This document shows positions 51,202 through 51,222 of a DNA stretch of 64,000 bases, piece after piece (the first letter of the stretch is position 1; each line of letters begins with the position of its first letter). The DNA is from Sminthopsis crassicaudata (Eukaryota). Both the position numbers and the translations under genes were made by a program. The notes beneath the pieces were generated by a model, which worked only from the letters and a program-made list of their open reading frames with translations, searched no databases and was not told where the DNA came from. The stretch spans positions 103,571,919 to 103,635,918 of the forward strand of contig NC_133618.1 in assembly GCF_048593235.1 (NCBI RefSeq), given 5' to 3'.

Positions 51202-51222
51202 GTGATATTGTGGAAATCCCAG
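51202..51222 (+). CDS. EML6: Candidate 21-nt alternative microexon of EML6 (G)DIVEIP(G)
   Basis: tgcttcctcattgccattgctcacacaatgcag|GTGATATTGTGGAAATCCCAG|gtaagg; phase 1-1, frame-preserving between exons 14 and 15. Confidence 0.75.

Follow-up and report, generated by a model that had tools for sequence, protein, structure and literature searches.

A 21-nt segment of Sminthopsis crassicaudata DNA is very probably the copy of a vertebrate-wide EML6 cassette microexon that lengthens a loop of the third TAPE domain

We analysed a 64,000-nt stretch of the Sminthopsis crassicaudata genome (the window) and find that the 21 nucleotides at 51202–51222 are very probably the S. crassicaudata version of an alternative cassette microexon found across vertebrates in the microtubule-associated gene EML6, whose inclusion or skipping would toggle a loop in the third TAPE domain (TAPE3). 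A first-pass annotation had picked out the segment from raw sequence alone, and the exon is real but already known rather than new, because its orthologue stands in many public vertebrate gene models. The comparisons made here directly show the anatomy and orthology of the exon, the coexistence of models with and without it within single other species, and the position of the loop that it encodes; we infer that the exon is spliced in in S. crassicaudata as well.

By sequence, the gene is EML6 (EMAP-like 6, which has three TAPE domains) rather than EML5. The window corresponds to residues 813–1840 of the 1966-residue Eulemur (lemur) EML6 model, in 20 colinear exons with 93.6% identity, and is 92% identical to the turtle model and about 91% identical to the lizard and bird models (local tblastn of the window outside 51170–51209, with exons compared singly rather than as a joined spliced model). 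The exon-end motif ATSQIG is of the amniote EML6 type, whereas EML5 has ATGQV(G/A). The microexon junction falls at about residue 1446 of the 1966-residue model, between the exons that had been numbered 14 and 15, a count made within the window which does not follow EML6 gene numbering. The initial placement of the insertion in the first propeller of TAPE3 agrees with the domain assignments: Pfam locates a HELP motif at 48236–48370, and the Pfam Beta-prop_EML profile is matched by both flanking exons, at profile positions 1–29 (upstream exon) and 40–98 (downstream exon). A 99-nt block at 47594–47692, which is 84% identical to the bird-like genomic contig L001, is most likely the linker exon preceding the TAPE3 HELP exon.

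The microexon lies on the forward strand with cag directly 5' and gtaagg directly 3', inside a 1101-nt intron separating two EML6 coding exons, 704 nt from the upstream exon and 376 nt from the downstream one. Both neighbours are of phase 1, the final base of the upstream exon being one base of a Gly codon, and the 21 bases add seven residues (DIVEIPG) to the reading frame with no stop. The 3' splice-site region contains TGC triplets starting at 51169, 51180, 51186 and 51197 (−33, −22, −16 and −5 from the microexon) and an AG-free stretch of 48 nt before the acceptor AG. The in-frame phase 1-1 insertion of seven residues, the cag and gtaagg boundaries, the first three of these triplets and an AG-free zone of about 49 nt had all been noted at the outset and are borne out, with the addition of the fourth triplet. 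A motif resembling the candidate branch point is found at a matching distance in bird (−58) and rodent (−54) DNA. The donor of the microexon scores 8.5, against 2.6–2.9 for those of both neighbouring exons, while its acceptor scores below the acceptors of the flanking exons. Microexons usually show this combination of strong donor and weak acceptor.

Table 1. Coordinates of the microexon, its flanking exons and the associated intronic features in the window.
Feature	Position	Strand	Length	Remarks
Upstream constitutive EML6 coding exon	50399–50497	+	99 nt	Phase 1 to 1; tblastn, P0184 residues 1413–1446, 97%
Conserved intronic block leading into the acceptor	51036–51169	+		blastn against bird L001, 75.5% over 143 nt, E 5e-22
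Candidate branch point (yUnAy)	51142–51146	+		A 57 nt before the microexon; inferred from motif
3' splice-site region, AG-free, with four TGC triplets	51152–51201	+		Terminates in the acceptor AG
Cassette microexon	51202–51222	+	21 nt	Phase 1 to 1; AG acceptor, open frame, near-consensus donor; orthologous inserts
Donor site gtaagg, near consensus	51223–51230	+		Donor score 8.5
Downstream constitutive coding exon	51599–51772	+	174 nt	Phase 1 to 1; WD40-type blade; residues 1446–1504, 93%

Short open segments bounded by AG and GT are common by chance, and the window contains about 1450 of them, which is a point in favour of dismissing 51202–51222 as an accidental open frame within an intron. 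The microexon nevertheless stands apart from this background. Among 1452 AG..GT segments of 6–30 nt with an open phase-1 frame on either strand of the window, just one matches both splice scores of the microexon, namely the microexon itself, and it ranks far above the other candidates among the six in its own intron. We regard this uniqueness as supportive rather than decisive, because the score thresholds were chosen after the site had been seen; the matrices are moreover simple and rough. Against a profile of 28 distinct orthologous seven-residue inserts, DIVEIPG scores 14.1 bits compared with 3.5 for the next-best 21-nt AG..GT candidate in the window, and the fraction of random open 7-mers scoring at least as well is 2.4e-5. 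The accidental reading is further contradicted by the orthologous inserts themselves, by their equivalent position and by the conservation of the DNA across vertebrate classes, and we consider its probability to be negligible.

The orthologous inserts were collected by a word search with the EML6 region of mole, which yielded 120 EML6 and EML5 models in which the residues between the flanking exons could be read off; exon 15 as sole query had retrieved nothing but unspliced genomic ORF fragments, and a library-wide search had then given full-length representatives. Many EML6 models contain a seven-residue insert exactly at the junction and many others have nothing extra there. The insert is present in EML6 models of amniotes (Larus, Corvus, Alca, Lacerta and five snakes), of amphibians (Xenopus, Rana, Ascaphus, Leptodactylus and Ambystoma) and of fish and lamprey (many teleosts, Amia, Mobula and Petromyzon). 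Position 1 is acidic (Asn in snakes), position 2 aliphatic or small, position 3 small, position 4 acidic (Gly in one smelt model), position 5 usually hydrophobic, position 6 Pro, Ser or Ala, and position 7 Gly. Thus gull, crow, razorbill and sand lizard have DMTEFPG, the five snakes NMAEFPG, Xenopus DIAEYSG and lamprey DIADMAG, while the Fundulus insert DISEIPG is a single residue away from DIVEIPG. The cassettes of Lacerta agilis (X1), Corvus kubaryi (X2), Pantherophis guttatus (X1), Xenopus laevis, Fundulus and Petromyzon (X1) all share junction, length, phase and residue pattern with the window, although the middle residues differ.

In several species, models that carry the insert stand beside models that lack it, which makes it an alternative cassette of EML6 TAPE3; the S. 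crassicaudata copy may be used in the same way. The two forms are modelled side by side in Ascaphus (X1/X2 versus X3), Electrophorus (X2 versus X4), Gasterosteus and snakes. All 11 invertebrate models inspected, from amphioxus to molluscs, have the short turn only.

The same junction is also occupied in EML5. The models of Anguilla (eel) and Esox (pike) carry a related insert there, and the peptide DSADMSA, which the first-pass annotation had ascribed to EML5, is found unaltered in P0334, a spliced EML5 fragment derived from Logan. The idea put forward on this basis, of an ancient microexon shared by EML5 and EML6, is right, because seven-residue inserts are found at exactly the same junction in models of both genes, and for EML6 they extend from lamprey to birds. 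The third-TAPE turn of EML5/EML6 has been optional since before the split between lampreys and jawed vertebrates. The accompanying description of the two inserts as very different does not hold, as they share acidic residues at positions 1 and 4, a usually hydrophobic position 5 and a small last residue (Gly or Ala). They differ in that the EML5 cassette ends in Ser-Ala and that of EML6 in the window in Pro-Gly. In EML5 the codon straddling the junction encodes Ala in the skipped form and Gly in the form with the exon.

Not every string at this junction is of the standard type. Four teleost EML6 models (P0258, P0261, P0275 and P0277) have a 12-residue version comprising the usual first six residues, five more and the closing Gly, which could reflect either use of another donor, making the exon longer, or an additional tiny exon. 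Unrelated strings of 4–21 residues are found at the junction in P0188, P0191, P0218, P0241, P0295, P0298, P0330 and P0332; these suggest read-in of intron sequence or wrongly placed splice sites, as though annotation pipelines stumble over the microexon.

Conservation at the level of genomic DNA was assessed using the exon-15 ORF fragments as handles for genomic contigs, setting aside, as possibly human, those whose exon 15 equals that of primate models. In the bird-like contig L001, the microexon is found in the same intron at 5577–5597 and is followed by the donor gtaagg. Its TGC triplets are at −34, −22, −16 and −5, as compared with −33, −22, −16 and −5 in the window. By eye, the 60 nt upstream of the microexon are nearly identical in bird and window, and are more alike than the exon itself, which matches at 15 of 21 bases (hand count). 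When 13 kb of the window was compared with L001 by blastn, with 51170–51209 left out, the intronic block leading into the acceptor was the only non-exonic HSP, and this block also matches the eutherian contig L002. On these alignments, the intron directly upstream of the microexon is conserved between bird and S. crassicaudata about as well as the coding exons. A turn kept optional for so long, together with a regulatory intron conserved to this degree, suggests a regulated function for the loop in a poorly understood group of microtubule proteins. The L001 HSP covering the upstream exon also takes in about 65 nt of the following intron (50498–50563), such that conservation extends to the donor side of that exon.

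Intact 21-nt copies, each retaining the acceptor AG and the donor gtaagg, are present in L002 (at about 1530–1550) and in three further contigs, L003 (at 1484–1504), L004 and L005. We take all four to be rodent or at least non-primate: L003 has B1 and B2 SINE matches, L004 and L005 each have a B2 match, and exon 15 of L002 departs from every primate model at two residues. The first six donor bases are identical in window, bird and rodents. These copies, together with the inserts in vertebrate protein models, supply the cross-species conservation that had been proposed as a check on the exon. The encoded peptides of the rodent contigs and L002, DTAESTG and DTTESTG, score only 6–7 bits on the insert profile; in the rodent copies the hydrophobic-Pro pair at positions 5–6 is replaced by Ser-Thr and two of the four TGC triplets are changed. 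This is possibly a lineage-specific change in use or regulation, and the peptide may be less constrained in mammals.

The drift of the rodent peptide and the loss of those TGC triplets would also be expected if the exon had worked in earlier vertebrates, were no longer spliced in mammals and persisted intact in the window by inertia. The mammalian gene models are in keeping with such a relic. The insert is missing from all 8 of the sampled eutherian protein models (40 members having been read from an amniote cluster of 2094) and from a deer fragment, and a word search with a 241-residue part recovered the EML5 insert but no mammalian EML6 transcript fragment with an insert; no insert-bearing model from S. 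crassicaudata or from any mammal was among those examined. We nevertheless consider a relic of this kind to be improbable. Frame, acceptor AG, gtaagg and upstream block are intact in S. crassicaudata and in two rodent contigs, matching the bird, and an intron free of selection would not retain all these features over mammalian time scales. Gene models, for their part, often miss microexons, as the junk inserts at this very junction in several of them illustrate. An exon that is intact in mammalian DNA and absent from sampled eutherian models may simply be one that annotation pipelines miss there. Accepting the segment as the conserved cassette exon, we suggest, tentatively and as the less probable course, that it is still used in mammals yet unannotated, and that there it toggles TAPE3 between a short turn and an EML1-like long loop, altering, in neurons, a contact of the propeller face with a partner or with tubulin.

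The anatomy of the exon also bears on how it might be regulated. Neural microexons of the SRRM4 type have been reported to combine UGC motifs with a long distance between branch point and 3' splice site (PMC12871342). The EML6 microexon falls within the 3–27 nt range, preserves the reading frame, is conserved across vertebrates and carries UGC motifs along the AG-free stretch that leads to its acceptor, all of which are features of SRRM3/4-dependent exons, the UGC trait being given in the same work. To these likenesses with SRRM3/SRRM4 neural microexons, which include deep conservation and UGC motifs in an extended region between branch point and acceptor, may be added the strong donor. From anatomy, therefore, regulation of the neural SRRM3/4 type seems plausible, and inclusion would be neural or otherwise tissue-restricted, driven by SRRM3/4 binding to the UGC-rich AG-free upstream region.

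A real cassette exon need not be a neural SRRM3/4 target, and inclusion in testis, in muscle or more broadly, under other regulators, is a possibility to which we give appreciable but clearly lesser weight. Some of the dynamic brain microexons are without UGC motifs and other regulators do exist (PMC12871342), and EML5 is reported to be highly expressed in both testis and brain (PMC9037033). The four UGC triplets within 33 nt of the acceptor, with positions conserved between bird and window, point instead to SRRM3/4, as do the 48-nt AG-free zone, the distal candidate branch point and the very strong donor, a combination that is textbook for SRRM4-dependent exons (PMC12871342). A literature search found no paper joining EML6 or EML5 with a microexon, and neither gene is mentioned in the supplements of PMC7821500 and PMC12626424.

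The position of the insert within the fold was examined using the TAPE3 sequence of lizard, whose EML6 model bears the insert. In the Pfam propeller profile, ten positions separate the match to the upstream exon from that to the downstream exon, about the number of residues expected there in the family. An AlphaFold model of the lizard domain, computed from a 60-sequence alignment, has a mean pLDDT of 73.5 and superimposes on the EML1 TAPE structure (4CI8) with a TM score of 0.83. In this model, which has low reliability around this region of the propeller, the seven insert residues form a coil with pLDDT below 50, located between strands 108–112 and 126–131. A loop location had been suggested for verification by structure prediction, and the prediction agrees with it: the microexon, as modelled, lengthens one surface loop by seven residues. 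The site is presumably the B–C turn of a WD40 blade, on the face usually called top.

Inclusion of the microexon would place its seven residues at the turn that joins two beta-strands within a single blade of the first TAPE3 propeller, so converting a tight turn of two residues into a flexible loop about as long as the constitutive loop of EML1. Skipping, on the other hand, would leave a turn resembling the short ones found at the matching position in the first two TAPE domains of EML6. The comparison with EML1 comes from alignment of the insert-bearing lizard TAPE3 to 4CI8 (E 5.5e-17), in which the EML6 loop is one residue shorter than the long loop at the equivalent turn of EML1. The two loops differ in other respects, since that of EML1 is part of the protein in the solved chain and is basic and Gly-rich, whereas that of EML6 is optional and acidic. 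The loop may tune an interaction surface.

Elsewhere in the window, recurring ORF-like strings at 1511–1777, 5567–5800, 8145–8291 and 47160–47366 share one peptide motif and look like copies of a single SINE family. Dinucleotide microsatellites at 43500–43590 and 49100–49200 show up among the open reading frames as runs of His-Thr and Cys-Val.
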